Below are positions 38,885 to 57,352 of a stretch of 64,000 nt of DNA, piece by piece. Every line of letters starts with the position of its first letter. The stretch's first letter is position 1. A program made the translations under genes and the position numbers. The stretch is from the sequence record NC_020077.1. One strand, written 5' to 3'. The notes under the pieces were generated by a model that made no database searches, had not been told where the DNA came from, and saw only the letters and a list, made by a program, of their open reading frames with translations.

Positions 38885-39060
38885 ATTTAAAAATACATTA
38901 TACCTTGTCACCCCACAGTTAGGAGGGGGTGTTGAGCCTCAACCTTACGATTCACTGTGGTTACCAACCACTCCACGTGAGGGTCATGGGCCCCCTTCGA
39001 GCCCCAAGGCATGAGGCTCACATCTAATTTTTTAGCTATATTCCACGCTGCTATAACGTC
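38885..39060 (-). ncRNA. Putative omega-RNA overlapping tnpB 3' end, guide in flank
   Basis: GC-rich block nearly identical in DNA between both tnpB copies, while gene bodies differ at synonymous sites; boundaries approximate. Confidence 0.6.
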
Positions 39061-40252
39061 CCTATCATGCGTAAAGCCACACTTCTTGCATTTTAGAACC
39101 CTAGGTTGCCAGCCTCTCCTCTGGGCATTGTTTGTCATAATATTTAGGCTAGAACCACACTTAGGGCATGTCCTAGAGGTATTTTTAGGGTTTACAAATT
39201 CCACTTTTATACCGTATTCTAATGCCTTTTCTGTAATACGTTTCTGTATTCCTCTTATTGCTGATTGTTTAAGTCTATGTGCATCAAATGATTTAAGTCC
39301 ATCTTTCTTAAGCGCCTTATCCTGGAAATTTTTAGGAAGCTTTTCCAATACAAGAGCAGCATTCTCCTTCTTAACTATCTTTGCTACGAAAGAAGCAACC
39401 TTATCTCTCAGTGCTTTTTTAACACTCTTCTCTCTTAACTTTCTTAAAGCAATACGAAGTGATCTCTTATCATGCGCATGTCTTTCCTGGATAGATTTTC
39501 TTCTGTATGCATAGCCTAACACTACCTTACTGTGATTAGTTACGAGTGTGATTGCTTTATGGTCTGGTAGTGTGAAGAGTGTCACATTATTCTCATTCAC
39601 ATCAATGCCAATTACTCTGTTGTAGTTTGTGTTTGGTTCGACGGTTTTACGAAAAAATACATATAACGTCAGCTTTCTGTCTTCGATTTTCCATCTACAA
39701 GAGTCTCTAAGAGTCCAGCCGCCATTGTAGTGTATGTAAAACTGTTTGTGGAAAAGTAATGGTATTCTTATCCATCCCTTGTGGGTAGAGATTTCAACGC
39801 CTTGGAAAGACAGTTTCCAAGACATATTGCCACAGCTGACAGTCCATTGTTTAACTTCTGGTTTTTCAGTGTAAGCAAGGCCTTTCTTTTTCAGCTTTCT
39901 GAAGGATTCCAGTCTAGATGCTGCATCGCGTATTGCCTGTTGAACATATTGTGATGGTAAGTCTGGGTACTTCTCTCTAAAGTACTTGTATAATTCTTTA
40001 ATCCCTCTTAGCCAAGATGTTGTGCCTTTTTGATACATTACATTTACTGCTTCTTTTACCATTTCACCATATACCTTATAAACATAAGAAAGAGCTTCGG
40101 CCTTTTTTGCCGTTAGCCTTAGTGAGACAAGTTCAACCGTTTTTGTAACCTTTTCGCTCATTACGTACCACCAACCCCTCCCTGGAATCACCAGGCATTG
40201 GGGGCTATCATAAGCAGCGAAGTGAAAATTAATAAACTTTACTTTTTATCTC
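38902..40252 (-). mobile_element. IS200/IS605-family solo-tnpB (IS1341-like) element 1
   Basis: tnpB without tnpA; upstream ~55 bp and downstream end GGGTGACAAGGT shared with element 2. Confidence 0.8.
38908..40161 (-). CDS. tnpB: RNA-guided endonuclease TnpB
   Basis: RuvC-I GIDVNE, RuvC-II VLEKL, Zn finger CPKC/CKKC, RuvC-III DRDVIAAWN; MSEKV start at 40161 (ORF extends to 40191). Confidence 0.93.
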   Translation of the reverse strand: MSEKVTKTVELVSLRLTAKKAEALSYVYKVYGEMVKEAVNVMYQKGTTSWLRGIKELYKYFREKYPDLPSQYVQQAIRDAASRLESFRKLKKKGLAYTEKPEVKQWTVSCGNMSWKLSFQGVEISTHKGWIRIPLLFHKQFYIHYNGGWTLRDSCRWKIEDRKLTLYVFFRKTVEPNTNYNRVIGIDVNENNVTLFTLPDHKAITLVTNHSKVVLGYAYRRKSIQERHAHDKRSLRIALRKLREKSVKKALRDKVASFVAKIVKKENAALVLEKLPKNFQDKALKKDGLKSFDAHRLKQSAIRGIQKRITEKALEYGIKVEFVNPKNTSRTCPKCGSSLNIMTNNAQRRGWQPRVLKCKKCGFTHDRDVIAAWNIAKKLDVSLMPWGSKGAHDPHVEWLVTTVNRKVEAQHPLLTVG

Positions 40253-40277
40253 GTAAGCCAGGTATGAATAAAAACCC

Positions 40278-40325
40278 TTCTCCAAAACTGGAGAATTGTA
40301 ATGACAGTTCTGCAAATTTGGTAAA
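40278..40325. repeat. 48-bp tri-palindromic element, full copy
   Basis: TTCTCCAAAACTGGAGAA-TTGTAATGACAG-TTCTGCAAATTTGGTAAA. Confidence 0.9.
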
Positions 40326-40346
40326 AAAACAGTTAAAATAAATCTT

Positions 40347-40595
40347 CTAGAACTCTGCATAATTCTTTTCTCTAATCTGCCTCATAACCTCATTATACAT
40401 TCTGCGGAATAATTGTTTCATCTCCTCAGCCTTCATCTGGAATAGCTCAGCTGCGCTCAGTTGATCTGCGATATATGTCTTTATGATATTATGTATCATA
40501 GGTTCAAGGTCCTTCCTTTCTATGACTAAGAGCGTATTACAACAAACTATCTCACAAAGCACATCGTCACATTCGACCTTAAACATTGTTCTCAT
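40347..40595 (-). CDS. Hypothetical protein
   Basis: 82-aa ORF with late-type promoter at 40620-40630. Confidence 0.6.
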   Translation of the reverse strand: MRTMFKVECDDVLCEIVCCNTLLVIERKDLEPMIHNIIKTYIADQLSAAELFQMKAEEMKQLFRRMYNEVMRQIREKNYAEF

Positions 40596-40675
40596 GTGGT
40601 AAGAAAAGAAAAATAAAAAATAAAAAGACTCGCTAAGTATAAGTCTTTAAAATTCCAACAACGTATTTATAAATT

Positions 40676-43600
40676 ATGAAGAGTGGTGAGTTAATAATCC
40701 GTCTTCTCCTCCTTAATTTACTCCTAACTAGCATCATATTAGTTGCGACAGGAATAAAAGCAGATTCAAGTGTCTCAGCACAGCCAATTGGGCAAGCAAC
40801 AGTGTACACAGCACCTTACACATCAACAAGCTTCGTACTTAACACCACAGTAAATCCAATAAACCCAATAGCAAGTAATATAAGACTATTCAAGTACCCA
40901 AACCTAACTGGGCCAATACAGGCTTTCGTATCACAAGGCTGGTCATCGATATCATCTGGATCATACCCAACGTCAAGAGTAATAAAAGTAGTGCCGGGCA
41001 GTGGAGTTAGTGGCGTGTACCCAGATTACTTGTTTAATGGATCGATGTTCAGAGTAGGAAGTGTAGTAGAATCAACTGCGTGGAGTCCAGCACCTAAACC
41101 TTATTATCAAGGGAATTTACTAGTGATAAATTCGACTGGTTCAACAGCTGGGCAATACATAGGATGGGCTTTTTCACCTTCAACAACAACACTTAATGTT
41201 ACGATACACGTAGTATCATTCCCAGAGCGTTATGCTAATCCAGGCATTGATCTTCTTAGTCCGAATGTAGGAAACCAGACAAATGATGGACAGGCTGGAT
41301 ATTATTTACTTCTTGTTGATCTTTATGGTAGTTCAATATACTACCATGGACCATCTGTTAACTGGCAACAGTTATATACTTCACTGCCACAACCTAATCC
41401 AAGCTATCCATTTACTTTTAGTATTATATACACGGAGAATAGTGCTGGTAATGTAACAGTTGCTGAAATAGGAATAAACGGTACGTATACAACAATCAAT
41501 GTAAATACGCCATTTCCTTGGACACAGATTGGTTATGTAGCAATAAGAGAAGATCCAAATAATTTAATCTACGTCTCCTATTTGGCAGCATCTAGCGGTT
41601 CAGTATTTGTGCAATTCCTCCCAACATCTTCGATAGGTGAAGCAGTGAAATATCCATCTTTAATAGAGTCAACTACTTGGAGTCCATCACCTACACCTTA
41701 TTATCAAGGGAATTTGTTAGTGGTAAATACAAGTAATGATGCAAATCTGCAATATATAGGATGGGCTTTTTCACCTTCAACAACAACACTTAATGTTACG
41801 ATACACGTAGTATCATTCCCAGAGCGTAATAATAACCCAGGCATTACAATTTATAGCCCAAATATAGGAAACCAAACAACCGATAGTAATAATGGATTTT
41901 ATGTACTTCTTGTTGATTTTTATGGTGATACAGTATGGTATCATGGGCTATCTACTGGCTGGCAACCGTTATATGGATCATTCCCGCAACCTAATCCAAA
42001 CTATCCGTTTACTTTCTCTGTCATATATACAGAAAATAGTGCTGGGAATGTAACAGTGGCAGAAATAGGGATAAACGGTACGTACACGACAGTGAACTAT
42101 AACACACCATTCCCATGGTCACAAATAGGTTATGTAGCAATACATGGGGATCATACTGATTTATTCTACGTCTCTTATTTCGCAGCATCCAGCGGCCCAA
42201 TATTTGCGCAATTCGTCCCACCACGAGAATTACAATATCCACCTTTCGTAGAGTCAACTGCCTGGAGTCCAGCACCTAAACCTTATTATCAAGGGAATTT
42301 GTTAGTGATAAATTCGACCGGTTCAGTAGCCGGGCAATATATAGGATGGGCTTTTTCACCTTCAACAACAACACTTAATGTTACGATACACGTAGTATCA
42401 TTCCCAGAGCGTTATGCTAATCCAGGCATTGATCTTCTTAGTCCGAATGTAGGAAACCAGACAAATGATGGACAGGCTGGATATTATTTACTTCTTGTTG
42501 ATCTTTATGGTAGTTCAATATACTACCATGGACCATCTGTTAACTGGCAACAGTTATATACTTCACTGCCACAACCTAATCCAAGCTATCCATTTACTTT
42601 TAGTATTATATACACGGAGAATAGTGCTGGTAATGTAACAGTTGCTGAAATAGGAATAAACGGTACGTATACAACAATCAATGTAAATACGCCATTTCCT
42701 TGGACACAGATTGGTTATGTAGCAATAAGAGAAGATCCAAATAATTTAATCTACGTCTCCTATTTGGCAGCCTCAAGTGGCCAACCAGGTACTTATCCAG
42801 TTGTCTTTGTTCCATCATACACTGTTAACGCTAATCCTTTCCCAATCTTTCGTTTCCCATCAACTATTACTCAAGCTTACCTAGTGTATAATAATAACAC
42901 CGTGTTCTTGTCATCGATAGATGCTGGTGGCCAATTCTTCTTGAATATTCCATTAAAAATGCAATGGGAGCCATTCACCTACTTTGGCCTAAGTGCATAT
43001 CAGCTTCTAACTGTTGTTAATGCACCAACTACTGGTTACCTTGCCGCTTTCCCATATCCTTTAACGTATAATTACTTTACTTCGCCTGGGCCTTTCACTT
43101 CTGTTCCATCGACTGTAATAACTCCAACGTTTAGTAAAACTACGTATCAATTAACTAACGTTTCAATACAACAGCTGACATTATTCACCTCTGCTGGTAG
43201 TGTCACAACTTCAACGCAAGCTTACGTTTTGCCCAACATAGGGGCGTGGACTTATGCTTCAGTGCAATACCCAACTTCAGTGAGTGTAATAGTGAATAAT
43301 ACTGTGCAAAAGCTTAGTGTGAGTGGCGCATCTGTAACTGTCACAGCATCATACCCAACGACAGTAATAGCCCCAGACAATTTAATACCCCCACCAAATG
43401 CACAAGTAAGTGTATACAATGCTACTTTTAACAAAATAGTTATATCTTCAACGTCAACCTTCACATTTAGTACACAGATAGTACAGTCTGGATTGCCAAC
43501 GTTTGGGCTGGTGCTGCCAGTGTGGTATTATGTTTCGCTAGGGACTGGAACGATTGGCGTACCATTAGAACAAGTGCCTATGATATTGGGTAATAAACTA

Positions 43601-45319
43601 TTTGCATTCTTGCCAGAAGTTGTGTCAACTACCTGGAGTCCATCACCTACACCTTATTATCAAGGGAATTTGTTAGTTATAAATACAAGTAATGTTGCAC
43701 ATCTGGAATATATAGGATGGGCTTTTATGCCTTCAACAACAACACTAAATGTCACAATACACGTAGTATCATTCCCAGAGCGTAATAATAACCCAGGCAT
43801 TACAATTTATAGCCCAAATATAGGAAACCAAAGTGATGATAGTAATGGCGGATTTTATGTACTTCTTGTTGATTTTTATGGTGATACAGTATGGTACCAT
43901 GGACCATCTACTGGCTGGCAACCGTTATACGGTTCATTCCCGCAACCTAATCCAAACTATCCGTTTACTTTCACTGTCATCTTTACGGAAAATAGTGCTG
44001 GGAATGTAACAGTGGCAGAAATAGGGATAAACGGTACGTACACGACAGTGAACTATAACACACCATTCCCATGGTCACAAATAGGTTATGTAGCAATACA
44101 TGGGGATCATTCTAATTTATTCTACGTCTCCTATTTCTCAGCATCTAGCGGCCCAACTTCCATCACTTTCGTTTCTCCCTCCTACATCTTCTTAAACAGT
44201 TGGGTATCTTCTTATGTTGTACCTAGCTATCTAAACACGCCCTATGCTTTACCTTACTCTGTATCACAAACTAGCGCTCAAGTTGGCCAATACACCCTTT
44301 CGCAAGGTTTGAACTACGTTTCCTATTCATTTACGCCGGGTTACGTTGCTACTGCTATATTATACTATAACTCTACTCCAGTCCTAGCAAATCTACTATC
44401 ACCCTACATTTCTTACAAGTTCTCTTCACTAACTTTATCATTCTCTACTGCAACAGCTGCAATGTTTTCTAACTTCCCTATTCCAGCTCCTCAGCTACTA
44501 AGTAGTTATATTCCAGCTGGTTCTGTTCTTTATCAAGACCCTATCATATACTACATTTCTCCAACTACAGTTACAATGTATAATACTACGACACTAGCTA
44601 GTTTGCAAAGTTCTAACGCTAGTTCTAGCAGTGCGACTACTACTACTCCACCGCCTTCATCATCTACAAATACTACTACACAATCTATTTCCCCTGGCCA
44701 AATGCAGATAGTGTATAATGGTACAACTGTAATAAGGATAAACCTTGTTACTTTTCCATCAATTACAGTGTCTGAGATTGGCCAAATTATAGCTATGCCT
44801 ATTGTTAACTCATCTGGCGCTTATCTATACCTCTACAACTATAATCAGTCTGCCAATTTCAATGTAACTGTCGCTTATGAATTTAGTAATGGTAGTGTGG
44901 AAACAGTGAATGTTCGTGTTAATTCGATAATTCCAATTCCAGTGCCATATCTGGATTTGCCAGTTAAGGTTAATATAACTGTGTTAAACAAATCTATTAC
45001 TTTTAACATAACGCCAATTCAATTGGGTAGTTCACGATTAGCTCAAAATCTGTACAATGAGATTGCAAATGGCTTGCCTTATCCTTTCAGTCTCTTTGGT
45101 ACTCTTCTTGCTAATCTATTCTTCTCTGTATTTGGCATATCAGCGATATTAAGGAATAATTTGAGATTACTTGGAATAGGCGGAATTGCGTATGGTGCAT
45201 TTATAGCCCCAGGCTTGCTAGACTTAGGCTTCCCGTTGTTTCCTACTGTTATGAGTGCGTTAGTAGCGATTGGTGTAGGTCTTGTTGCAATATGGGCAAG
45301 TACGAGAAGTACTAGTTAA
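40676..45319 (+). CDS. Large membrane-anchored adhesin / receptor-binding candidate with four beta-sandwich-like repeats
   Basis: Signal peptide, four 178-aa repeats, S/T-rich stalk, C-terminal TM helices, many N-glycosylation sequons. Confidence 0.75.
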   Translation: MKSGELIIRLLLLNLLLTSIILVATGIKADSSVSAQPIGQATVYTAPYTSTSFVLNTTVNPINPIASNIRLFKYPNLTGPIQAFVSQGWSSISSGSYPTSRVIKVVPGSGVSGVYPDYLFNGSMFRVGSVVESTAWSPAPKPYYQGNLLVINSTGSTAGQYIGWAFSPSTTTLNVTIHVVSFPERYANPGIDLLSPNVGNQTNDGQAGYYLLLVDLYGSSIYYHGPSVNWQQLYTSLPQPNPSYPFTFSIIYTENSAGNVTVAEIGINGTYTTINVNTPFPWTQIGYVAIREDPNNLIYVSYLAASSGSVFVQFLPTSSIGEAVKYPSLIESTTWSPSPTPYYQGNLLVVNTSNDANLQYIGWAFSPSTTTLNVTIHVVSFPERNNNPGITIYSPNIGNQTTDSNNGFYVLLVDFYGDTVWYHGLSTGWQPLYGSFPQPNPNYPFTFSVIYTENSAGNVTVAEIGINGTYTTVNYNTPFPWSQIGYVAIHGDHTDLFYVSYFAASSGPIFAQFVPPRELQYPPFVESTAWSPAPKPYYQGNLLVINSTGSVAGQYIGWAFSPSTTTLNVTIHVVSFPERYANPGIDLLSPNVGNQTNDGQAGYYLLLVDLYGSSIYYHGPSVNWQQLYTSLPQPNPSYPFTFSIIYTENSAGNVTVAEIGINGTYTTINVNTPFPWTQIGYVAIREDPNNLIYVSYLAASSGQPGTYPVVFVPSYTVNANPFPIFRFPSTITQAYLVYNNNTVFLSSIDAGGQFFLNIPLKMQWEPFTYFGLSAYQLLTVVNAPTTGYLAAFPYPLTYNYFTSPGPFTSVPSTVITPTFSKTTYQLTNVSIQQLTLFTSAGSVTTSTQAYVLPNIGAWTYASVQYPTSVSVIVNNTVQKLSVSGASVTVTASYPTTVIAPDNLIPPPNAQVSVYNATFNKIVISSTSTFTFSTQIVQSGLPTFGLVLPVWYYVSLGTGTIGVPLEQVPMILGNKLFAFLPEVVSTTWSPSPTPYYQGNLLVINTSNVAHLEYIGWAFMPSTTTLNVTIHVVSFPERNNNPGITIYSPNIGNQSDDSNGGFYVLLVDFYGDTVWYHGPSTGWQPLYGSFPQPNPNYPFTFTVIFTENSAGNVTVAEIGINGTYTTVNYNTPFPWSQIGYVAIHGDHSNLFYVSYFSASSGPTSITFVSPSYIFLNSWVSSYVVPSYLNTPYALPYSVSQTSAQVGQYTLSQGLNYVSYSFTPGYVATAILYYNSTPVLANLLSPYISYKFSSLTLSFSTATAAMFSNFPIPAPQLLSSYIPAGSVLYQDPIIYYISPTTVTMYNTTTLASLQSSNASSSSATTTTPPPSSSTNTTTQSISPGQMQIVYNGTTVIRINLVTFPSITVSEIGQIIAMPIVNSSGAYLYLYNYNQSANFNVTVAYEFSNGSVETVNVRVNSIIPIPVPYLDLPVKVNITVLNKSITFNITPIQLGSSRLAQNLYNEIANGLPYPFSLFGTLLANLFFSVFGISAILRNNLRLLGIGGIAYGAFIAPGLLDLGFPLFPTVMSALVAIGVGLVAIWASTRSTS
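41066..44151 (+). repeat. Four 533-bp intragenic repeats in A-B-A-B order
   Basis: A1 41066-41598, B1 41663-42195, A2 42248-42780, B2 43619-44151. Confidence 0.92.
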
Positions 45320-45328
45320 TTTTTTTAT

Positions 45329-45679
45329 TTATTGTGAAGAAGTTTGAGAAGGTTTTTCTATTACCTCCTTGTAAAAAACATTTAACCACTTGTCTACATA
45401 AAGTGCTATAGCTGTTTTTATGATGATGGCTGGCGTAACGTTTCTCCTCTTTGCTAGCTCTTCTATTGCTTCGACCAGATTGCGATCTAATTTCATAACC
45501 TTTATATGCCTTTTTCCTGGCTTAATGTAATACTTGTCGATTGGGTTTTGCAGGTACTCTATCAATGCCTCATTTATTAGCTGTGCCTGATCCTTCTTAA
45601 GAAAGTTTGACACTTTTTGGAGGCTGTCAAATAGGTGATTATCTAAGGGAAATCTAACTTGAACTCTCTGCCCTGCCAT
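45329..45679 (-). CDS. Tandem two-RHH DNA-binding protein
   Basis: RVQVRFPLDNHLFDSL...LINEAL and IKVMKLDRNLVEAI...IIKTAI. Confidence 0.8.
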   Translation of the reverse strand: MAGQRVQVRFPLDNHLFDSLQKVSNFLKKDQAQLINEALIEYLQNPIDKYYIKPGKRHIKVMKLDRNLVEAIEELAKRRNVTPAIIIKTAIALYVDKWLNVFYKEVIEKPSQTSSQ

Positions 45680-45731
45680 ACGTTTTTGCTCTTCATTCTA
45701 GTATTTAAATCTTTCTGACCTAATGAAGATA

Positions 45732-46283
45732 CTACGAATTTACGATACGCGCTAAGTAATCTTCCGCCTCCTTCGTTTGAACATAAGTCAGAATGTGGCG
45801 CAAGCTCTTATGCCCAGTTATTTTTGCAACCACTTCAGCCGGTAATCCATCTTTTATTGCTTTTGTTATAAAAGCATAACGGAAAGAATGCGTATTTACA
45901 CCATAACGCCTTTTACAAAACATCTTAACTGCTGCAATCATTTTCCTTTCACTTTTTGTAAGGATGATGGAATAATACTTTTTGTAAGTGATTATTTTGG
46001 GGATGATGATTTTTCTTTCATTCCCGCCTTTTTCAGCCTTTAAGATGATTGTTCTTTCTTTGCCACCAACCTCTACAAATTGGTAGAAAGCCTTAACTGC
46101 TTCGCCTATTCGTGTACCATTTGTAAGTTGTGTAAGTAAAATTGCAACGTAAATCTCTTTGTCAAAATCTTCAGCGGAGTTTTGCGAGAATTGCTTATAG
46201 TCTTTTTCTAAGGTTTTTCTCATCTTGTCAAAGTCAACTCCCTTGTCCCACTTGAATATTGTCTTCCCTTCTTCTATTGCCAC
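45732..46283 (-). CDS. Minimal tyrosine recombinase (catalytic domain only)
   Basis: GTRIGEA (R), KAEKGG (K), THSFRY (HxxR), TGHKS (H), LTYV (Y); 183 aa. Confidence 0.88.
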   Translation of the reverse strand: MAIEEGKTIFKWDKGVDFDKMRKTLEKDYKQFSQNSAEDFDKEIYVAILLTQLTNGTRIGEAVKAFYQFVEVGGKERTIILKAEKGGNERKIIIPKIITYKKYYSIILTKSERKMIAAVKMFCKRRYGVNTHSFRYAFITKAIKDGLPAEVVAKITGHKSLRHILTYVQTKEAEDYLARIVNS

Positions 46284-46427
46284 ACTTTCATTTTAGATTA
46301 AGCAGTTAAAAATATTCTTTCTGTAAAATTGGAGAAGTAAAGGGAACTAAAAGAGGTCAAAAGTAACGTGTTTATGACGTTGCTGATTATAGAAAGTTTT
46401 AAATATTAGAAAAACAGAACCTAAAAT

Positions 46428-46580
46428 ATGCCATTCAAATGTCCGGTCTGCGGTGAATTCGGAACGCTATATGTTAAAAAAGTAGAAAAAAGAAGATGCC
46501 ATTATTATATAAATCATTATAATAAAAAGCACTGCTACATAGGGCCAGTAAATGATTGTAGTGGTTTTGTAGAGATTTAG
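46428..46580 (+). pseudogene. Truncated duplicate of the zinc-finger gene at 46763
   Basis: MPFKCPVCGEFGTLYVKK...HCYIGPVND then diverges to a stop; own copy of 18-mer (46319) and promoter (46391). Confidence 0.75.
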
Positions 46581-46762
46581 AGAAGCATTCATAACTTATG
46601 TATACATAAGTAAGGTAAATCTTTTTTTTCCAAAATTACCGCTCTTATCTTCTTTCTATAAAATTGTAGAAACAAAGGGCAGTGAAAGACGTAAAAAATG
46701 ACGAGTTCATAACGTTAGTGATTATAGAAAGTTTTAAATACAAGAAAAACAGATCCTAACAT

Positions 46763-47203
46763 ATGTCAACCAAATGCCCAATTTGTGGTGAAAATGGAAC
46801 CCTATACATCAAAAAGTCAGGAAAAAGAAAATATTATTATATAAACCATAATAATAAAAAGCACTGCTACCTAGGGCCGGTAGATGAGTATGTACATGTC
46901 GTAATGAATTATTTAAAAGTTTTTGGCAAACTCCATTTAACAAATGTGAGAGATGCTGATCTAATTGCTGTAATGATGGAGATACTCGATGTACTTGAAG
47001 AGAGATATAAGGGATCAAAAGACTTGAAACTGAAGGCAGATCTAAGGATGATAAGGGACAGGATAGGCAAGATACTAGAGGAAAGCGATACTCAAGCTGG
47101 CCAAGATGAGAAGCAAGAACAAAAAGTAGTGGAAATAATAGAAGGAGATGGCAAAGATGGGAAAGTAGAAAAACCAGTGGAAATAGAGGTACAACATCTT
47201 TAA
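46763..47203 (+). CDS. Zinc-binding (CxxC...H...C) small protein
   Basis: CPICGENG...YYYINH...HCYLGP; early-type promoter AGAAAGTTTTAAATA at 46726-46740. Confidence 0.75.
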   Translation: MSTKCPICGENGTLYIKKSGKRKYYYINHNNKKHCYLGPVDEYVHVVMNYLKVFGKLHLTNVRDADLIAVMMEILDVLEERYKGSKDLKLKADLRMIRDRIGKILEESDTQAGQDEKQEQKVVEIIEGDGKDGKVEKPVEIEVQHL

Positions 47204-47230
47204 ATTATCTTTCTTTTTCTTTTATTTAAT

Positions 47231-47994: not shown

Positions 47995-48033
47995 TTTGGG
48001 TCACTATCAAAGAAAGGAAAAAAATAGATCAGC

Positions 48034-48174: not shown

Positions 48175-48256
48175 CTCATTAGTAATCTCTTTATACACAT
48201 TTTTAAACTTTTGCTTGGTGCGAAAGGTTTAAAATAAAAAGATAGAAAAAATAAAA

Positions 48257-48682: not shown

Positions 48683-48814
48683 TTTTTTCGAACTTGTGAA
48701 ACTGCTTAACGCTTTATTTTTTACGTCATAAGTTCGAAGTTCCTGTATATAGCAGAAGTTCGAAGTTCGAAAGTGAAAGTAGATGAGGAAAAACCTTTGG
48801 TAAATTTACAGAAG
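48681..48814 (-). repeat. ~135-bp intergenic repeat, copy 3 (inverted)
   Basis: Reverse complement aligns with 27229-27362; includes 18-mer at 48796-48813. Confidence 0.9.
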
Positions 48815-48825
48815 TCATGACAAAT

Positions 48826-50064
48826 CTATCTAACCTTTTTCAACACCACCAGATGCTCGGTTTTGATTCTACTATCTTCTAGCCCAGTGGCCGGATTTAC
48901 ATCTGCTTCGAACATTACGCGAGAAACTATTTTATCAACATAGGTAACTTCATGTTTCCAACCAAACTCTCTTAGGTGCTCAGCAATTATATCATCTATT
49001 TGAATAGGTACATTTCGTATCTTAGCTGGGCCAACAAAGATGAACATGTAATCTGCCACTCTTTCACCTAACGTAGCGAATACCTGCAAAATTGCATTAA
49101 AGTAATTGTCATAAAGTGCCCTAAGATGGTTTTCCTCTATTTTTTCTCTGAGGGTGTAATACGTTTCTGAAAAAATGTTTGTGCTTCTTACTTGTCTATA
49201 AGGAATCTCTCTTTTGCTCAGTGATTGTATGTACTGCTCATCATAGCCCAACCAAAATAGCTCAAGTTTAGTAGACCTAATATACTCTTGTGCTTGCAAG
49301 TAAGGTGGAGACGTGATAAGGACATTAACTTCTTTATCTAGCTTGGTTTCCAACGTGTCAATACCGGCTTTTAACTCATACTCCACTGCTTTTGGATTAA
49401 GATGATTGTACTCTTCTATTTTTGTAATAAGCGTAAGTATCTCATTCTTTAACATGTTATAAAATTTGGCTTTCCAATTTGTTTTAAGAAGTTCTTCTAC
49501 CTTTTGTTTAGAGTACTTTGACTTAAATAGTTTGTGTACTTTTTCATCGCTGTACGAAAAATATCGCGTAACCTTGAGTAACGGTATTAATAGTAAGTAT
49601 TTTGTATCATCTGTCAGTGAGTGTACAAAACCCCATGCATTTGAAAGAAAAGTTAGAAACTCCTCCGGGAACCAATAGTTTAAGTTAGACCACTTGGGGA
49701 GGAATTCCTCTCGTGAGTTCATCAAATCTTTCATTATCTTTTCAACATCTATCTCTGCTCTTGACATGATAGCTGTATTATGAGTCACGTTTATTATTGG
49801 ATTTAATTCCCACAATATATAACTATAGCCATACACTCTTGCCACTACACCAACTGTGCCGTAGCCAGCAAAAGGGTCAAAGACCGTCATGTCTGGCTTA
49901 CAATAAGCCTTTAGCGCGTAGGCAACAACTTGCGGAATGAATTTAGCAGGGTAACGATAGATAGCAAATGTGGCATATGTAGTTGTTGGAATTTCCGGGA
50001 TCATGTTCCTAAAAACTACGGGAACCCTTTGAGACCCTTCAGACGATACCGTCATAATTATCAT
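48826..50064 (-). CDS. DNA amino-methyltransferase, alpha order (probable N4-cytosine)
   Basis: FDPFAGYGT (motif I) before LITSPPY (motif IV); YRYPAKF N-terminus. Confidence 0.85.
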   Translation of the reverse strand: MIIMTVSSEGSQRVPVVFRNMIPEIPTTTYATFAIYRYPAKFIPQVVAYALKAYCKPDMTVFDPFAGYGTVGVVARVYGYSYILWELNPIINVTHNTAIMSRAEIDVEKIMKDLMNSREEFLPKWSNLNYWFPEEFLTFLSNAWGFVHSLTDDTKYLLLIPLLKVTRYFSYSDEKVHKLFKSKYSKQKVEELLKTNWKAKFYNMLKNEILTLITKIEEYNHLNPKAVEYELKAGIDTLETKLDKEVNVLITSPPYLQAQEYIRSTKLELFWLGYDEQYIQSLSKREIPYRQVRSTNIFSETYYTLREKIEENHLRALYDNYFNAILQVFATLGERVADYMFIFVGPAKIRNVPIQIDDIIAEHLREFGWKHEVTYVDKIVSRVMFEADVNPATGLEDSRIKTEHLVVLKKVR

Positions 50065-50076
50065 TTAATGAAATCT

Positions 50077-50460
50077 TTATTGGGATCTTATTACCTTTAT
50101 TACTTTTTCATTTTCATCATAGATAAATTTAGTAATATCTCCAGGCCTTACTCGAAAATGTATTAATAATTTTGCGGGTATCTTCAACCTATAATTTATG
50201 GAAACTATGGCAAAATCTTCAAACTCGAGTTGTAGTGGATTTTCTGCATTCTGTGAATCAACAGGCAACATCCTAGTTGGTGAGACTCTAGTATATGCTT
50301 TAACTAACCTTAGCATTGGTTCATTGCCATTTTTGACAACGCTCACTCTCATAATGTCGCCTAAAGCTATCGGGTAAACCTTCCTTATTGCTATTGGTAT
50401 CGTTACTACGTAATTCGTAGTAACTTTTGAATACGATTCGACTACCATTTTTTCCACCAT
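50077..50460 (-). CDS. Tandem AbrB/SpoVT-domain DNA-binding protein
   Basis: SKVTTNYVVTIPIAIRK...LGDIM and VSINYRLKIPAKLL...RPGDI; early-type promoter at 50493-50507. Confidence 0.75.
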   Translation of the reverse strand: MVEKMVVESYSKVTTNYVVTIPIAIRKVYPIALGDIMRVSVVKNGNEPMLRLVKAYTRVSPTRMLPVDSQNAENPLQLEFEDFAIVSINYRLKIPAKLLIHFRVRPGDITKFIYDENEKVIKVIRSQ

Positions 50461-50546
50461 TCCTTCACATTACGTTTTTTGTAATTTACCAATATATAAA
50501 TCTTTCTATAATAGTGATGAAAACAAACTTCGGAAAAATGAACTAC

Positions 50547-51539
50547 TTAACCAAAAACCTTCCTAAAAACTTCTTCGTGTTCTCTTATCACTCTTTCTAT
50601 CCTGAAATAGTCCGGCAATGTAACTCTAATCTCTTGAGCCTCCTTTATTTTCTCTACTGCTTCTTCATCGCTGCTGTAGAAGAACATCTTCAAATGTTTG
50701 CCAAGTTCTTTATGCACTGGAATATCTGTCACAACCGCTGGGAGGCCATGTGCTGCTGCTTCAGCTAGTGGTAATTCAAACCCCTCTTCTTGTGATGTAC
50801 TAAGATAAACGTCACTCCCAGCATAAAGGAGTGAAAGTTCGGCGTCTGAAATAGTTCCTATGCTTTTATCGCCGTAAATATTTCCTTTCCCTACTGTAAT
50901 GAGATAATAATCATCACCTAGTTTTTCCCTTATTCGCTTCAATCGTGGTAAGTCTTTCCGCGGATGATAGTTTGTAACGTTGAGTATTATCTTTTTATTG
51001 GGCGGGATGCCATACATTTCTCTTACTTTGCGTACTGCCTCTTCACGTGTATAAGCAATGTTAAGGTAATTCCCGTGGTGAATAACCCTAATAGGAGGTA
51101 AATCGAGGCCTTTCTTATCCGCATATTGTTCTAACTCTGATAATGTATGATAAGTTGGAACAATAACGTATGCAGCCTCTGTGAGATGTTTAAGCATGAA
51201 GTACATGTATGGCGTGTAGGTGTAGTGTTTCCATTTTAAGAAAACTAAATCTTGTAGTCCCGTAACTATTGTCTTATGTTTAGCGTGATTCAAGAAATCG
51301 ATGTTTGGAAAAAACACGTTTTGTTCTGGAACAAATTTACAGAAGATGTCGTAGAAAAACGCGTCGATTATAATATTTAGCCTATTTCTGAAAACGTTTA
51401 TTACCTTATCATAACCAGAGGGTGCTTCAGTGTTAACTCGGATAAAATAGAACTTAGAATTAAGGCCAAAGGCAATAACTGCTGCGTATCGACCTAGGCC
51501 AGTGTATGGCGGAGATCGCGTAACAGTAGCGAAATTCAC
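50547..51539 (-). CDS. GT4 (GT-B) glycosyltransferase
   Basis: PRKD, LYAGSDVYLSTSQEEGFELPLAEAAAHGLPAVVTDIP (Ex7E motif). Confidence 0.9.
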   Translation of the reverse strand: MNFATVTRSPPYTGLGRYAAVIAFGLNSKFYFIRVNTEAPSGYDKVINVFRNRLNIIIDAFFYDIFCKFVPEQNVFFPNIDFLNHAKHKTIVTGLQDLVFLKWKHYTYTPYMYFMLKHLTEAAYVIVPTYHTLSELEQYADKKGLDLPPIRVIHHGNYLNIAYTREEAVRKVREMYGIPPNKKIILNVTNYHPRKDLPRLKRIREKLGDDYYLITVGKGNIYGDKSIGTISDAELSLLYAGSDVYLSTSQEEGFELPLAEAAAHGLPAVVTDIPVHKELGKHLKMFFYSSDEEAVEKIKEAQEIRVTLPDYFRIERVIREHEEVFRKVFG

Positions 51540-51578
51540 AAAAAAACTTTTACCTTTACGGAATTATAAAGATTATTG

Positions 51579-53318
51579 TTAAAGTAAACTCTTTAGAGTG
51601 AGAACGCCATTATTCCCTACAACGTTGTAATAGCCAAACGCTTCAACAGTATTATTAGTAACACCAAGAATCTTAGCGTTTATTGCCGTATATATACCAG
51701 GTATTAAGAATAGTTTAGTTGTACCATTTACGCTAAATGATGGTGGCTTAAACAGAACTGGAGGGCCAGTATAGTTGTACTTCATCACAACAAACCAGTA
51801 GTAAACTGCATAAATTCCATACCCATTCTTGTAAAATAGGTTAAGCACCGCAATTGATTGATTATTGAAGTTACTCGTTATGTCAATGACAATGTAATCA
51901 ACACTGACGTTAACTGTAGTGTTAGTAGCAGAATCATAAACCAAATACTGATTTTTAGCAAAATTGAATGATGTGAAGTTTGTGTATTGTAAAACAAGTG
52001 GATATAAATGTTCTGGGACCCTTGGATAGAGCTCGGGCATGTATGGTGTAGTTAAGACAGAAGCGTTTTGAGGTATTAGACTTGCAACCTGGTAGAAGTC
52101 TTGAACACGGTCTGGATACTCTGCCAGCGTGTAATATGGCCCGCCTAATGCTATGCGCGAAGTGATTGAGACTGGGGAAATAAGTGATAGTACAGCAAAT
52201 GTAAGTAGGATAAATACTAATGCGTTTGGCATTATCCTCTTTAAGTTGAAACTATCAATTTTTGCAAGTGTCCTAGCTACAGTAATGAAGAGCTGGGCTA
52301 AGTAAAGTGATGCGTATTGGAATAAGTAAATATATGGGAACGTCATTGATGTATACGTTGTTATTGAAAATATGATAGCCACTGGTAGTATAGTTAGGAT
52401 AAACCAATCCCAAACAAAAAAGGCTGAGCCAAGGATTGTCAAAGGCGTTAAAAGATTCAAAGGCCTAAACCCAATGTTACTATGTCCACTTGAGCTAGCT
52501 AGATGCGATTGTATAAATATGTCAAACGCATTAGGCCCAAAAGCTGCAATTCCTAATGAAGTAAAAGTTATTGCAAAAATAGCAGCGTACATAATGTACT
52601 CAGATGCTTTGTTAAATTCATCTTTTGTTTTAGACTCTTCATGTCTTTTTCCGAAAAGAAGCATTGCGAAATTGCGACTTTTTATGGCTTCTTTAATTTC
52701 GTGTCTTTCTTCAAAAAGTTCTCTAAAAATATCTACAAGACCTTCAACAATAATGTACCATAATACAAGGAATACATAAGGATATCGAACAGTAGAAGCA
52801 AGAATTGCAAAGATCCCTGCTGGTATTGGCTTATTCTTTATCTTAAAGTAATACATTAATAAAAAGTATAGTACAAACAGATTTTGCATGTGGAAAGGCA
52901 TAAAAAGTTCGCCATAAACGCCAGGATTCAAGAGATAAAGCCACACCGTAAAGTATGCCTTATTATAACTTTTTGTTAATTCTTTGGTAATATAGAAGAT
53001 TGGAATTACTGGTGCTGCTGTTACTGCAGCTTGCCAAATCACTGCCTCGTAAGCGTTGTTTATGAAGAAGAAGTAGAGGAGCGGAGATTTATAGGAAAAC
53101 GTACCTAGGATATAGAGCCATGCAAGAGGGTTGTTTAGATGAGCAAGTTGCTGAGCAGTTAAATAAAGAAACATTAGGTTGACTCCAACATCGTAAATTG
53201 GAAAGGCCTCCATTGTTACGTATTGCTGATAGACAAAGGTATAGAATGCGGCAAAAGCTCCAGCGAAAATAAGAAAAACCCCGTATCTCTCTAAGAGATT
53301 TCTATATTTCTTGCCCAT
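51579..53318 (-). CDS. Polytopic membrane protein, DUF2079-like GT-C glycosyltransferase candidate
   Basis: YDVGV after TM1, PFH motif, about 10 TM helices, C-terminal glycosylated domain; MGKKY start at 53318 preferred over 53414. Confidence 0.6.
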   Translation of the reverse strand: MGKKYRNLLERYGVFLIFAGAFAAFYTFVYQQYVTMEAFPIYDVGVNLMFLYLTAQQLAHLNNPLAWLYILGTFSYKSPLLYFFFINNAYEAVIWQAAVTAAPVIPIFYITKELTKSYNKAYFTVWLYLLNPGVYGELFMPFHMQNLFVLYFLLMYYFKIKNKPIPAGIFAILASTVRYPYVFLVLWYIIVEGLVDIFRELFEERHEIKEAIKSRNFAMLLFGKRHEESKTKDEFNKASEYIMYAAIFAITFTSLGIAAFGPNAFDIFIQSHLASSSGHSNIGFRPLNLLTPLTILGSAFFVWDWFILTILPVAIIFSITTYTSMTFPYIYLFQYASLYLAQLFITVARTLAKIDSFNLKRIMPNALVFILLTFAVLSLISPVSITSRIALGGPYYTLAEYPDRVQDFYQVASLIPQNASVLTTPYMPELYPRVPEHLYPLVLQYTNFTSFNFAKNQYLVYDSATNTTVNVSVDYIVIDITSNFNNQSIAVLNLFYKNGYGIYAVYYWFVVMKYNYTGPPVLFKPPSFSVNGTTKLFLIPGIYTAINAKILGVTNNTVEAFGYYNVVGNNGVLTLKSLL

Positions 53319-53360
53319 CAAGTGATAATATATGTCGAGATATTTTAAATTTTTGGACTT

Positions 53361-53408
53361 TTCTCCAAATTGGTAGAATTGTAATGACAATTCTGTAAAT
53401 CTGGTGAA
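53361..53408. repeat. 48-bp tri-palindromic element, full copy
   Basis: TTCTCCAAATTGGTAGAA-TTGTAATGACAA-TTCTGTAAATCTGGTGAA, between divergent TATA boxes. Confidence 0.92.
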
Positions 53409-53448
53409 TTGCATAAATTCTTAAATATTTCTTAGTTGTTGTAATGAT

Positions 53449-53766
53449 ATGGAAGCTGAGATAGTTAAAGGATATAAGGATTTGGTGTTAGAGGCCCTGT
53501 TCTGGGCTTTGAAAAATATGTCTCGTGTAATCAACTATCAGGATGGGTGCCACGAATATTATGATAGAAATAAGGAGTGGTCACTTCAGATTTGTAAAAG
53601 CAGAAAAGAGGAAGTTAATGTCTTCATACACGATGGAAAAGTAATCGTACGTGTTGATGTCTATACATTAACTTACAAGGTTACAGAGATAGCGTTCGAT
53701 TTAATTGAAGATGCGATAGATGCTGTGTGGAGCGGAAAATATGTAACCACGAAAGATTTATCATGA
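53449..53766 (+). CDS. Hypothetical small protein
   Basis: 105-aa ORF with TATA at 53421. Confidence 0.7.
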   Translation: MEAEIVKGYKDLVLEALFWALKNMSRVINYQDGCHEYYDRNKEWSLQICKSRKEEVNVFIHDGKVIVRVDVYTLTYKVTEIAFDLIEDAIDAVWSGKYVTTKDLS

Positions 53767-53799
53767 TACTTATACAATTTTGTAGAAAAACCAGGAGGA

Positions 53800-54795
53800 T
53801 TACTTAATAGCTTTTTCGAGAGCTTGAATTTCTTTTTTACTAAATTTCTCAAACTCTTCCTTTAAGTACTTTATAGCCTTGTGAATTGCCATTATTGGGT
53901 TTTCTACGTTAAATCCAGTTTTGTATATCTTGGTTGAATCAAGCAGTAAGTAGTTTGGCTCAATTGGCCTTGGATTTTCCATCCAGCTTATCTTTCCTTC
54001 CCAGCCTAATTCCTTAGCAACGATAGAAACAGTTTCTGATAACGTCAGAATGTGATTATATACACTATAATGGATTGATACGTTATACACTCCTTCCATC
54101 TTATCTAGATTTTTAATAGCGTGTAGGTAAGCGTTCACGTGGTCCTCCCAGTACATCCATTGCCTGCTTGAGAGAGGATGGCCATCGTAATGTATTTCCC
54201 TAGCACCACTCAACATTGTTAAAACAGTTTTTTCAAAGAAGTATCCTCTTGCCTCTTCCGGCAAACGTGAAATTGGCCTACCAATAGTATTTATAGGCCT
54301 TAAGATAATTGTCTTTTCCTTTCTACCAGCAAGTAGCATCTCTGACGCTATTTTTGAAACTGCATAAGGACTAGTTGGTGTCCTATAAACATCCTCTTCC
54401 TTATAATAGTGAGGATAAGGTGTATAAGGGTAGACTTCGGCGGTTGAAGCGTGAATTAATGGGGCTTCTGCAATTGCTATGTTATATGCTATAATTGCGT
54501 TATTCATGAAAGAAGTGTCCTCATAACTAAGCCTAACAGGCGTTTTTGAGGCCAAGTTAATAACCAAATCAGGCTTTACCTTTCTTAACAAATCCCTTAC
54601 CTTTTCTCTGTCTGTGAGGTCAACGAAAACGTACTCCGCAGCGGAATTAACTGTGTTATGAGAAAAATGATCTTTATTTGAGACACATACTACCTTATCA
54701 TTGTTTAGCTTCTTAAGTAACTGGGAACCGATAAAGCCCGTACAGCCAGTGATTAAAATCATGAGATAGTTAATGTAGTCATTATTTTTAAACAT
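53800..54795 (-). CDS. NAD-dependent nucleotide-sugar epimerase/dehydratase (SDR)
   Basis: ILITGCTGFIG, INLAS, HASTAEVY, SPYAVSK (YxxxK); likely start 54762. Confidence 0.9.
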   Translation of the reverse strand: MFKNNDYINYLMILITGCTGFIGSQLLKKLNNDKVVCVSNKDHFSHNTVNSAAEYVFVDLTDREKVRDLLRKVKPDLVINLASKTPVRLSYEDTSFMNNAIIAYNIAIAEAPLIHASTAEVYPYTPYPHYYKEEDVYRTPTSPYAVSKIASEMLLAGRKEKTIILRPINTIGRPISRLPEEARGYFFEKTVLTMLSGAREIHYDGHPLSSRQWMYWEDHVNAYLHAIKNLDKMEGVYNVSIHYSVYNHILTLSETVSIVAKELGWEGKISWMENPRPIEPNYLLLDSTKIYKTGFNVENPIMAIHKAIKYLKEEFEKFSKKEIQALEKAIK

Positions 54796-54852
54796 TTCTT
54801 TTTGCTTAAATATGAATGGCTAAACAGAATTCTACAAATTTATAGAAGAAAA

Positions 54853-55746
54853 TTATTTTTGCGTGACTGACCTTTGTCCTCTAACTTTTTCCTGAAGCCA
54901 TGTCCTTAGCCATTTTGCGTCTTCTCTTATAATTATCTCGAAATTCGATGAATCCGAATTAAACAGTTTAGCGTGATCTATGCCTAGTTTCTTTTTGACC
55001 ACGTCAAGAAGTTCTAAATCAATTTCATAACCAACTGCTTTTCTTTGTAATTCAATAGCTACCTTTAATGTTGTAGCAGAACCCATAAATGGGTCCAAAA
55101 CAGTTTCGCCAACATAAGAAAATAACTTTATCAGCCTATAGGGAATCTCTTCTGGAAATGCAGCTATTCCTTCTTCAATTCTACCTTTCGCTGGTAAAAC
55201 GTTTGTAATCTCCCATACAGAAAGATACCACTTTTCTCGGTTAAACTCTTGTATATCAATTTTTGATAATTCTAACTCAAGTTTGTTTTTTGGGTATCTG
55301 TATTCACCTTTTTGCATAATCAAAATCTCCTCGTAGATGTTGTCTGGATAGAAATACATCGGATATGGATGCTGTATCTGTACTCCACTTCGTCTACTTA
55401 TCCTAATGTAACCCTCTGGCTTTTTCCAAATAATTCTATCCCGATAATTGAAACCTTCCTCCATCATTATTCTAAGAATGTCCGCAGACACAGGATATAA
55501 TTTCCCATTAATTCTAACATCTTGAGTAATAAAACAAGCTATCCTGCCCGGGGCCAAAACCCTATATAGTTCCCTAGCCACATCCCTTATCAACCCAAGA
55601 AATTCATCATAATCCCTAAATAAACCTGGATAATCAAAGGGAGCATTAAAATAAGGAGGTGAAGTAACCACTAGATGAATTGAACCATCTGGAAGTTCTT
55701 TCATGTTCCTGCTATCGCCGAAAACTATCAGATTTCCTTGAGGCAT
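54853..55746 (-). CDS. DNA amino-methyltransferase, beta order (probable N4-cytosine)
   Basis: VVTSPPY (motif IV) before AAFPEE and VLDPFMGSATT (motif I); MPQGN start. Confidence 0.9.
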   Translation of the reverse strand: MPQGNLIVFGDSRNMKELPDGSIHLVVTSPPYFNAPFDYPGLFRDYDEFLGLIRDVARELYRVLAPGRIACFITQDVRINGKLYPVSADILRIMMEEGFNYRDRIIWKKPEGYIRISRRSGVQIQHPYPMYFYPDNIYEEILIMQKGEYRYPKNKLELELSKIDIQEFNREKWYLSVWEITNVLPAKGRIEEGIAAFPEEIPYRLIKLFSYVGETVLDPFMGSATTLKVAIELQRKAVGYEIDLELLDVVKKKLGIDHAKLFNSDSSNFEIIIREDAKWLRTWLQEKVRGQRSVTQK

Positions 55747-55889
55747 TTTGTAACTATTGTTAATCTTGTGCTTTATATTTATTTTTCGTATACAGTAGAA
55801 GGTCACATCCGTTCTGTAAATTTACAGAAGCTAGAAATAAGCAAGTTAAGACCAAAAAATTTTTAAGTTATAATTATAACCATTATTCA

Positions 55890-56027
55890 ATGATTAATAT
55901 AAATGCCAGCGATCTAGTAGGTCTATATGATGCCATGTATGAAATAGAAAAGCTTAAGGATGACATTATGGAAATATCTGCTAGATTGAAGCAAATGCAG
56001 AATGACCTTGTCACCCGCCTAGGCTAG
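55890..56027 (+). CDS. Small coiled-coil ORF (45 aa), probably interrupted by tnpB element 2
   Basis: MININASDLVGLYDAMYEIEKLKDDIMEISARLKQMQNDLVTRLG; TTTTAAG at 55861. Confidence 0.55.
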   Translation: MININASDLVGLYDAMYEIEKLKDDIMEISARLKQMQNDLVTRLG

Positions 56028-56160
56028 GGTGTTGGGCCTCAACCTTACGGTTCATTGTAGCAACTTGCCACTCCACGTGAGGGTCATGGGCCCCCTTCGA
56101 GCCCCAAGGCACGAGGCTCACATCTAATTTTTTAGCTATATTCCACGCTGCTATAACGTC
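55988..56160 (-). ncRNA. Putative omega-RNA of tnpB element 2
   Basis: Same conserved GC-rich 3' block; boundaries approximate. Confidence 0.6.
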
Positions 56161-57352
56161 CCTATCGTGTGAGAATCCACATTTCTTACATTTTAGAATT
56201 CTAGGTTGCCAGCCTTTCCTCTGGGCCTTGCCAGTCATAAGAGTTAGACTAGCTCCACATTTAGGACAAGTCCTCGATGTATTCTTTGGATTTACAAACT
56301 CTACTTTTACACCATGTTCTAATGCTTTCTCCACAATTCGTTTCTGTATTCCTCTTATTGCTGACTGCATAAGCCTATGTGAATCAAACGATTTAAGGCC
56401 GTTTTTCTTAAGCGCCTTATCCTGGAACCTCTTAGGTAGGTTTTCCAATACAAGAGCAGCATTCTCTTTCTTTACAATCTTTGCTATAATAGATGCAACC
56501 TTATCTCTCAATGCTTTTTTGACATTCTTCTCTCTTAACTTTCTCAAAGCAACTCTGAGAGACCTCTTATCATGCGCATGTCTTTCTTGAATAGCTTTCC
56601 TTCTATACGCATAACCTAACACTACCTTACTGTGATTAGTTACTATCGTTATGGCCTTGTGATCTGGTAATGTGAAAAGTGTTACGTTATTCTCATTTAC
56701 ATCAACGCCAATTACTCTGCTGTAGTTTGTGTTTGGTTCGACGATTTTACGAAAAAACACGTATAACGTCAGCTTTCTGTCTTCGATTTTCCATCTAGCA
56801 GTACTTCTGAGAGTCCAGCCGCCATTATAGTGTATGTAAAACTGTTTATGGAAAAGTAATGGTATTCTTATCCATCCCTTGTGGGTAGAGATCTCAATAC
56901 CTAGAAAAGATAGTTTCCATAACTTCTGATGACAACTGACAGTCCATTGCTTAACTTCTGGTTTTTCAGTATAAGCAAGGCCTTTCTCCTTCAGCTTTTG
57001 AAAAGACTTCAGTCTAGTTGCCGCGTCACGTATTGCTTCATCAACATACTTTGCTGGTAAATCTGGATACTTCTCTCTAAAGTACTTGTATAATTCTTTA
57101 ATTCCTTTTACCCAGGATGTTATACCTTTTTGATGCAATATGTTTACTGCTTCTTTCAATATCTCTCCGTATGTCTTATAGACATAGGAAAGAGCTTCAG
57201 CCTTCTTTGCAGTAAGTCTTAGTGAGACCAGTTCAACCGTTTTTATGACCTCTTCACCCATTATGCATCACCAGCCCCTCTCAGCAGCGCCAGTCATTTG
57301 GGGCTATCATAAGTAACGATGTGAAAATTAATAAACTTTACTTTTTTACCTC
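56005..57352 (-). mobile_element. IS200/IS605-family solo-tnpB element 2
   Basis: Ends shared with element 1; no tnpA. Confidence 0.8.
56011..57261 (-). CDS. tnpB: RNA-guided endonuclease TnpB
   Basis: GVDVNE, VLENL, CPKC/CKKC, DRDVIAAWN; close paralog of 38908-40161. Confidence 0.93.
   Translation of the reverse strand: MGEEVIKTVELVSLRLTAKKAEALSYVYKTYGEILKEAVNILHQKGITSWVKGIKELYKYFREKYPDLPAKYVDEAIRDAATRLKSFQKLKEKGLAYTEKPEVKQWTVSCHQKLWKLSFLGIEISTHKGWIRIPLLFHKQFYIHYNGGWTLRSTARWKIEDRKLTLYVFFRKIVEPNTNYSRVIGVDVNENNVTLFTLPDHKAITIVTNHSKVVLGYAYRRKAIQERHAHDKRSLRVALRKLREKNVKKALRDKVASIIAKIVKKENAALVLENLPKRFQDKALKKNGLKSFDSHRLMQSAIRGIQKRIVEKALEHGVKVEFVNPKNTSRTCPKCGASLTLMTGKAQRKGWQPRILKCKKCGFSHDRDVIAAWNIAKKLDVSLVPWGSKGAHDPHVEWQVATMNRKVEAQHPSLGG

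Follow-up and report, generated by a model that had tools for sequence, protein, structure and literature searches.

Why would an archaeal virus keep two intact genes for RNA-guided nucleases when it has no transposase to move them? The question is raised by two elements, here called A and B, of Sulfolobus virus STSV2. Both lie in the 64,000-nt stretch of record NC_020077.1 that we analysed (the window, to which all positions refer unless stated otherwise), which corresponds to bases 12108-76107 of JQ287645.1 at 100% identity by megablast. GenBank labels both genes "IS605 ORFB family protein", so the presence of two orfB/tnpB genes in STSV2 is already on record; a literature search found no paper discussing their function. 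We conclude that A and B are TnpA-less derivatives of the IS607 family, each a complete OMEGA unit (short for obligate mobile element guided activity), and that homing among co-replicating viral genomes is the most likely mechanism for them, a reading that we hold with moderate confidence. Feature coordinates are collected in Table 1.

A sequence-only reading of this DNA had described two intact tnpB paralogs with all three RuvC acidic residues and no accompanying tnpA, and both statements were borne out. The two proteins share 355 of 414 residues (86%), exceed the Pfam cut-offs for Cas12f1-like_TNB and RuvC_1, and match Cas12f and TnpB chains of the PDB in sequence searches. RuvC residues D187, E273 and D368 and zinc-finger residues C332, C335, C358 and C361 are invariant across 29 aligned homologues. 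The overall WED-REC-RuvC-TNB fold is present in an AlphaFold TnpB model (predicted local distance difference test score, 76), for which Foldseek returned full-length matches to Cas12f (E 1e-16), ISFba1 TnpB (8iaz), ISDra2 TnpB (8h1j and 8exa) and Fanzor2. These two are the only tnpB copies in the 76-kb STSV2 genome. No Y1 (HUH) TnpA was detected anywhere in that genome with PF01797, which does score in control genomes, and a serine-recombinase tnpA (MerR-type helix-turn-helix plus resolvase) is absent both from the genome and from all 11 close tnpB copies.

The ends of the elements were placed by aligning A and B with nine further close copies, one from STSV4 and eight from seven short hot-spring contigs syntenic with STSV2. 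Left-end homology begins at GAG(A/G)TAAAAAG (40252 in A, 57352 in B), 91 nt before the ATG and not the ~55 bp proposed previously. A further 14 nt upstream are weakly common to several copies, and the outer left boundary is uncertain by this amount (40266 for A and 57366 for B are possible). The upstream flanks, previously read as ending TTACGA and TTGTGA, actually end CTTAC and CTTGT, two bases short of the earlier cut. Right-end homology stops at GACAAGG (38903 in A, 56006 in B), a boundary that rests on the 11 close copies and 35 more distant ones. The near-identical 3' block noted earlier is real but ends one base short of CAAGGT: the next base is T, A, G or C among the eleven close copies, so the T belongs to the flank and the guides begin at 38902 (A) and 56005 (B).

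Comparative evidence indicates that the last ~125 nt of each element are a structured guide-RNA scaffold, followed by a variable guide. We aligned 46 sequences over this 3' region, including the 35 more distant metagenome copies, and the RNAalifold consensus contains five helices with 27 pairs, 17 of which show compensatory changes. Paired cells make up 95.2% of the alignment positions concerned, compared to 84.4% in shuffles and at most 50.5% with slid partners, and the count of compensatory cells is 177, where shuffles gave 65.5 +/- 6.3 and slid controls never exceeded 35. Single-sequence folds were only weakly better than shuffles (z -2.4, -0.8 and -2.8) and prefer long-range pairing that covariation does not support, so the structural claim is carried by the covariation analysis. 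No Rfam family matches the scaffold.

The scaffold also leaves its mark on the coding sequence that it overlaps. Synonymous codon identity among the close copies rises from ~0.7 to 0.86 over the last ~45 codons, and synonymous divergence (dS) drops at least two-fold over the scaffold, with values of 0.5-0.9 for codons 1-375 but only 0.2-0.47 for the final ~50. The encoded tail of TnpB-A (residues 381-417, ~37 residues, window 38908-39020) is predicted to be disordered, whereas no other part of the gene is as conserved at the DNA level. The conservation is therefore best explained by the RNA, and the 3' coding region of tnpB is a clear case of dominant RNA constraint.

Although GenBank assigns both genes to IS605, their lineage points elsewhere. 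Relatives at 50-66% identity almost always have a MerR-type helix-turn-helix/serine-recombinase gene directly upstream of tnpB, and since the nearest cellular relatives carry this serine-recombinase tnpA, the STSV tnpB lineage is IS607. The left end of these IS607-type relatives starts AGGG and their scaffold and right end finishes AACGG. The STSV copies finish AAGG, and their left end is related only to the inner, promoter part of the IS607-type left end, with AGAA or GAGA at the outer tip where the relatives have the AGGG core. The promoter box in this left end would drive transcription as an archaeal-type promoter. Since tnpA is missing from the STSV copies and present in most of the 50-66% relatives, we regard A and B as derivatives of the IS607 family and not as complete members; the STSV clade has lost tnpA.

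This clade is old and, in our searches, confined to viruses of one group. The STSV copies are monophyletic (97/97 support); A groups with the L008, L014 and P0001 copies and B falls outside that group. Together with a dS of 0.63, the separate sub-branches indicate that A and B are old lineages, and the tree and dS rule out a recent intragenomic duplication. Homologues at 79-89% identity came from no source other than STSV3, STSV4 and short STSV-like contigs that had been placed in various metagenome-assembled genomes. IMG/VR yielded no relatives with either a protein scan or the 29-sequence alignment, and species-representative genomes yielded only relatives at 25-29% identity. Nothing above 37% identity was found in 400 Thermoproteota genomes (whether hosts were among them was not confirmed), a plasmid collection held no match to element A, and no close homologue (>70% identity) was found in cultured Sulfolobaceae or other named cellular isolates.

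All 11 close tnpB copies are intact, and the ratio of nonsynonymous to synonymous divergence (dN/dS) is 0.11-0.15 for ten pairs of copies, showing that the TnpB protein has been kept working. Strong purifying selection without a transposase suggests that the nuclease and guide RNA themselves aid transmission, and the simplest way in which they could do so is by homing among viral genomes that replicate together. The same observations bear on the possibility that the elements are stranded relics, which lost their transposase, neither move nor cut to any use, and merely ride along in the viral genome. STSV2 indeed has no tnpA, the outer left-end tip is not the IS607 AGGG core, guide B lacks a known target and STSV1 shows decay by internal deletion (both described below). 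However, relics would hardly retain such low dN/dS at a dS of ~0.6 between copies, intact reading frames in 11 of 11 cases with invariant catalytic and zinc residues, an RNA structure maintained by compensatory changes, and at least eight insertion positions among close viruses. We consider this the least probable of the explanations weighed here.

Homing would require targets for the guides in related viruses that lack the insertion. The guides differ at every one of the 11 close copies and equal the local flank. As the sequence-only reading had noted, neither 20-nt guide has a second match in the window; this holds at up to 3 mismatches, and the whole STSV2 genome gave only chance-level 3-mismatch matches to the 16-nt guides. 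The same reading had proposed a search for element-free alleles in relatives, and some were found. STSV3 lacks the element at site A and has CTTAT followed by a 15/16 match to guide A, with 14 contiguous bases from the side of the putative target-adjacent motif (TAM). A precedent comes from the host genus: the TnpB of S. islandicus works as a nuclease at 65-75 C, depends on a TAM, has its seed at +1 to +10 and tolerates distal mismatches (bioRxiv 10.1101/2023.03.06.531077), so the STSV3 allele would plausibly be cut. The metagenomic, STSV-like L008 virus also lacks element A, and its allele has a 1-nt insertion at guide position 8.

Guide matches of other copies point in the reverse direction, towards STSV2 or STSV1. 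The STSV4 element (OP999030, L015) interrupts an adenine-specific DNA methylase gene, and its right flank is identical to the intact STSV2 methylase gene over the 16-nt guide and over 44 bases in all (record positions ~10566-10609, outside the window). The L008 guide matches the window at ~40637, the L012 insertion corresponds to ~58134-58160, the L014 guide has a 14/16 match (STSV2 or STSV1), and the L013 guide has a 13/16 match in STSV1 and a 15/20 match at window ~50309. Among close viruses, at least eight different insertion positions are occupied. STSV1-4 all come from Tengchong springs (PMC10101205). It should be noted that the right flank of any insertion will match the uninterrupted allele, so these matches are necessary for homing and are not evidence of it.

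STSV1 does not provide an empty site at either locus, and was rejected as such. At site A it holds a remnant of ~177 bp (AJ783769 ~53650-53830), in which tnpB is deleted and the left-end promoter lies ~23 nt upstream of the last ~125 nt, exactly the scaffold stretch. The 12 nt of flank adjoining the right end are also missing, so its would-be guide differs from guide A. This would-be guide matches the STSV2 flank at 16/16 positions. The promoter-scaffold remnant might function as a guide-RNA gene in its own right. At site B the difference is a complex replacement of 1544 bp: STSV1 lacks window 55823-57366, and the STSV2 insert extends beyond the element by 14 nt to the left and ~180 nt to the right. 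A promoter module stands on either side of this insert, in two copies that are 81% identical, and the insert takes the place of the middle of a 46-bp palindrome.

Guide B, together with ~120 nt of its flank, occurs in no other virus examined, and STSV1 site B is without them. No match to guide B outside STSV2 was found in a phage collection, and the 111 matches from a 16-mer scan of IMG/VR were uninformative, being as many as chance would give at this length. Among the relatives examined, no target is thus known for copy B.

The positions of the two guides raise the alternative of exaptation, in which TnpB and its guide would serve the virus as a regulator or nuclease acting on a nearby viral promoter, the host, or unrelated competitors such as SMV1. 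The clade is long-lived, virus-restricted and under purifying selection, guide A falls where the promoter of the next gene downstream is located, a small open reading frame (ORF) runs antisense to guide B, and phage-borne relatives of TnpB are reported to act as guide-RNA transcription factors. Against such a role, the nuclease triad is intact, unlike that of known regulator derivatives, and guides that differ at every copy are no more than the adjoining flank. A second match was found for neither guide in STSV2 or STSV1, nor for guide B in the phage collection (where guide A was not searched for, nor either guide in host genomes), and no homologue of the small ORF opposite guide B was found. 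We judge exaptation to be improbable.

A TAM was sought in the five bases preceding the left end or the guide match. Across 11 junctions these are roughly CTTAY, with T at -4 in 8, T at -3 in 9 and a pyrimidine at -1 in all 11 (binomial p-values 0.007, 0.001 and 0.0005 against genome composition). Uninterrupted alleles have CTTAT, CTAAC, AGTAT, CTTTT and similar sequences before the guide match. The CTTAY-like motif resembles the TTAC- and TTAT-type targets of the IS200/IS605 family, whose elements lie 3' of 4-5 conserved nt that also serve as the TAM, and as a candidate TAM it is only a lead. An IS607-type GG core would be expected at both junctions and in the target; the right end does finish GG, but there is no GG in any of the 11 junctions.

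The missing core is relevant to a classical IS607 cycle operating in trans, in which a serine-recombinase TnpA of the host would move the elements from site to site and from replicon to replicon and TnpB would only restore them after excision from the same genome, with no conflict between viruses. Such a cycle would fit a sister clade of IS607 elements with tnpA and the many insertion positions, and there is a case of orfB elements that are mobile without a transposase of their own, in S. solfataricus P1, where they insert at GGC (PMC4872121). However, the junctions of the uninterrupted alleles are without the GG core that serine-recombinase transposition requires, no homologue above 70% identity was found in the named cellular isolates, the 400 Thermoproteota genomes or the plasmids, and three insertions carry extra DNA and long direct repeats. 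We regard movement in trans as unlikely, if the least so of the three alternatives.

In the homing mechanism that we favour, each OMEGA unit consists of a short left end with its own putative promoter, tnpB for the RNA-guided RuvC nuclease, and a ~125-nt scaffold over the last 40 codons, and the ~16-20 nt of viral flank that follow GACAAGG would act as the guide. TnpB would load the 3' end of its own transcript and cut a co-replicating viral genome that carries the uninterrupted allele, with a short T-rich motif (approximately CTTAY) beside the sequence that the guide matches. Repair by recombination with a genome that bears the element would then copy the element in, or the cut genome would be lost, and the element would be kept and spread among related viruses without a transposase. 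We infer guide-RNA expression and processing, the TAM, cleavage and homing from the comparisons above.

RNA-seq data from infected cells, from four runs of one 2015 study, are consistent with transcription: contigs cover tnpB-A, and those of three runs also continue across its right end and guide (38811-38997). These data also head the list of points that weigh against the proposed mechanism, since contigs show presence only, not processed omega-RNA ends, strand or level, and DNA carry-over is possible. Secondly, the 11 junctions from which the TAM is inferred were placed by hand and are partly dependent. Thirdly, the tested IS607 TnpB uses a TGGG TAM and no uninterrupted allele has GG at that position; if the clade kept a G-rich TAM, these alleles are not targets. 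Fourthly, extra DNA accompanies the elements at insertions B, L012 and L009b, with direct repeats of 15-68 bp on either side, which looks like recombinational shuffling of larger modules and not like clean insertion or homing. Neither peel-and-paste nor serine-recombinase insertion explains these repeat-flanked insertions. Lastly, flanks near shared insertions are no more alike than the rest of the genome, and the absence of a known target for copy B belongs here as well. As for the repeats themselves, those at insertion B are ~68 bp long and 81% identical (55819-55886 and 57374-57440), and those at L012 and L009b are 15-30 bp.

The homing drive put forward by the sequence-only reading thus survives in part: the TnpB identity, covarying scaffold, purifying selection and uninterrupted site A alleles support it, while guide B has no known target and STSV1 proved not to be empty. 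Likewise, its expectation of element-free alleles holds for STSV3 and the L008 virus at site A and for the STSV4 guide in the intact STSV2 gene, and fails for the STSV1 site A remnant and for guide B. Homing of the elements between viruses is therefore partly supported, and spread between co-infecting viruses is plausible on these genome comparisons. A bolder possibility, which we put forward tentatively and think more likely wrong than right, is that this TnpB/omega-RNA clade works between co-infecting relatives as a gene drive guided by RNA, or as a weapon of marker exclusion. Each virus would hold elements at sites of its own, with guides that match the intact alleles of neighbours, remnants could borrow the TnpB of a co-infecting virus, and small right-end deletions would re-aim guides. 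The STSV4 guide matching the STSV2 methylase gene would be an example of such a guide, and the STSV1 promoter-scaffold fusion of a guide-RNA-only remnant.

Comparison with known systems places the STSV elements as ordinary OMEGA elements in identity and anatomy, in an unusual home. They resemble the IS607 TnpB/omega-RNA elements, exemplified by the Clostridium botulinum IStron CboIStron, in TnpB fold, catalytic residues, and a scaffold that covers the 3' end of tnpB and ends in GG before the guide. In CboIStron, the TAM TGGG is told apart from the right end TCGG at position -3 (bioRxiv 10.1101/2023.11.20.567912), and the AGGG left end and ACGG right end of the cellular relatives of the STSV clade parallel this pair. 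The STSV elements differ in having neither tnpA nor a group I intron, only the promoter part of the left end, a right end of AAGG, T-rich uninterrupted-allele junctions with no GG core, and residence in archaeal virus genomes.

Lone tnpB genes with a 3' RNA are also found in the Sulfolobales and their mobile elements, as the Sulfolobus orfB elements (annotated as IS605/IS1341-type) and SisTnpB1. The S. solfataricus P1 orfB element is transposase-less, produces the 100-nt RNA Sso-109 and inserts at GGC (PMC4872121), and SisTnpB1 of S. islandicus is a proven thermophilic RNA-guided nuclease with TAM TTTAA (relaxed to WNHNN), encoded beside a Y1 tnpA (bioRxiv 10.1101/2023.03.06.531077). No close sequence relative of the STSV clade was found in cultured Sulfolobaceae. 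Homing of IS200/IS605 elements (ISDra2, Geobacillus) follows the same proposed mechanism, cutting of the element-free TAM and target and restoration by recombination; the STSV elements have no Y1 transposase, no demonstrated subterminal hairpin ends, and a gene of IS607 lineage. A further parallel is found in T-even phages, with their free-standing homing endonucleases (Seg, Mob) and marker exclusion in co-infection (reviewed in PMC13565253). There, as proposed for the STSV elements, a nuclease gene spreads to related co-infecting viruses by cutting the allele without it, but the STSV target would be read by a flank-derived guide RNA and not by protein.

Table 1. Features of elements A and B in the 64,000-nt window of STSV2
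Feature	Position	Strand	Description and basis
Element A, TnpA-less TnpB/omega-RNA element	38903-40252	-	Homology with B and nine copies from GAGATAAAAAG to GACAAGG; absent in STSV3 and the L008 virus
tnpB-A coding sequence	38908-40161	-	417 aa from ATG; GenBank STSV2_50 start is GTG 40191
Left end A	40162-40252	-	Archaeal-type promoter box AAAGTTTATTAA (40229-40240) and structured 5' leader; conserved in 10 copies
Omega-RNA-like scaffold A	38903-39027	-	Overlaps last 40 codons of tnpB-A plus 5 nt; covariation and dS dip
Putative guide A	38883-38902	-	First 20 nt of right flank, TATAATGTATTTTTAAATAT; within promoter region of downstream gene
Element B	56006-57352	-	Same alignment as A; orthologous insertion in L013
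tnpB-B coding sequence	56011-57261	-	416 aa
Left end B	57262-57352	-	Promoter box and leader; alignment with other copies
Omega-RNA-like scaffold B	56006-56127	-	3' alignment and covariation
Putative guide B	55986-56005	-	TCATTCTGCATTTGCTTCAA; antisense to 45-aa ORF
STSV2-specific right flank of B	55823-56005		Contains 45-aa ORF and second promoter-module copy (~55819-55886, 81% like 57374-57440)

Several further features were observed around the elements. The 45-aa ORF (55890-56027, plus strand) that runs antisense across guide B has no homologue in STSV1, STSV2 or related contigs, and was therefore not treated as a gene. Downstream of element A, STSV2_49 is annotated from a GTG at 38911 and so overlaps the tnpB-A stop (window 38858-38911). 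Comparison with STSV1 ORF52 and an upstream TATA-like box point to ATG 38860 as its start, and the overlap probably reflects an error of annotation. In all four RNA-seq runs, a ~53-nt fragment with adaptor at both ends is very abundant; it maps to the 5' part of STSV2_49 (38800-38852) and may represent either a stable small RNA or a product of processing. Next to the L011 copy, the right flank (L011 5255-5290) resembles the left-end promoter of the family, suggesting two tandem elements; the contig ends soon after.

A palindromic motif of ~20 bp (AGAATTGTCATGACAATTCT-like) occurs at window 195-214, 2276-2295, 16124-16143, 27428-27447, 40292-40311 and 53375-53394, in addition to single half-sites; 16 half-sites were found where 0.97 would be expected. 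One copy is only ~40 bp away from element A, and another, intact in STSV1, lost its centre to insertion B. The motif may be an operator or terminator, and is possibly a preferred neighbourhood for insertion.

Homing by TnpB has been shown for bacterial chromosomal insertion sequences, and our literature search turned up no account of such homing from one virus to another, or in viruses of archaea. What is less ordinary about the STSV elements is that they form a long-lived, transposase-less, virus-resident clade with polymorphic sites and guides that match the intact alleles of neighbours. The STSV group is a tractable natural test bed: four of its viruses, all from the same spring system, are in culture, their hosts are known and genetically accessible, insertion sites are polymorphic and target alleles are at hand. 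On the practical side, it offers compact nucleases (416-417 aa) that presumably work at 70-80 C and need a scaffold of only ~125 nt. For the family, the clade shows that TnpB of the IS607 lineage can persist for long periods without a recombinase, which argues for a transmission advantage conferred by nuclease and guide RNA on their own.

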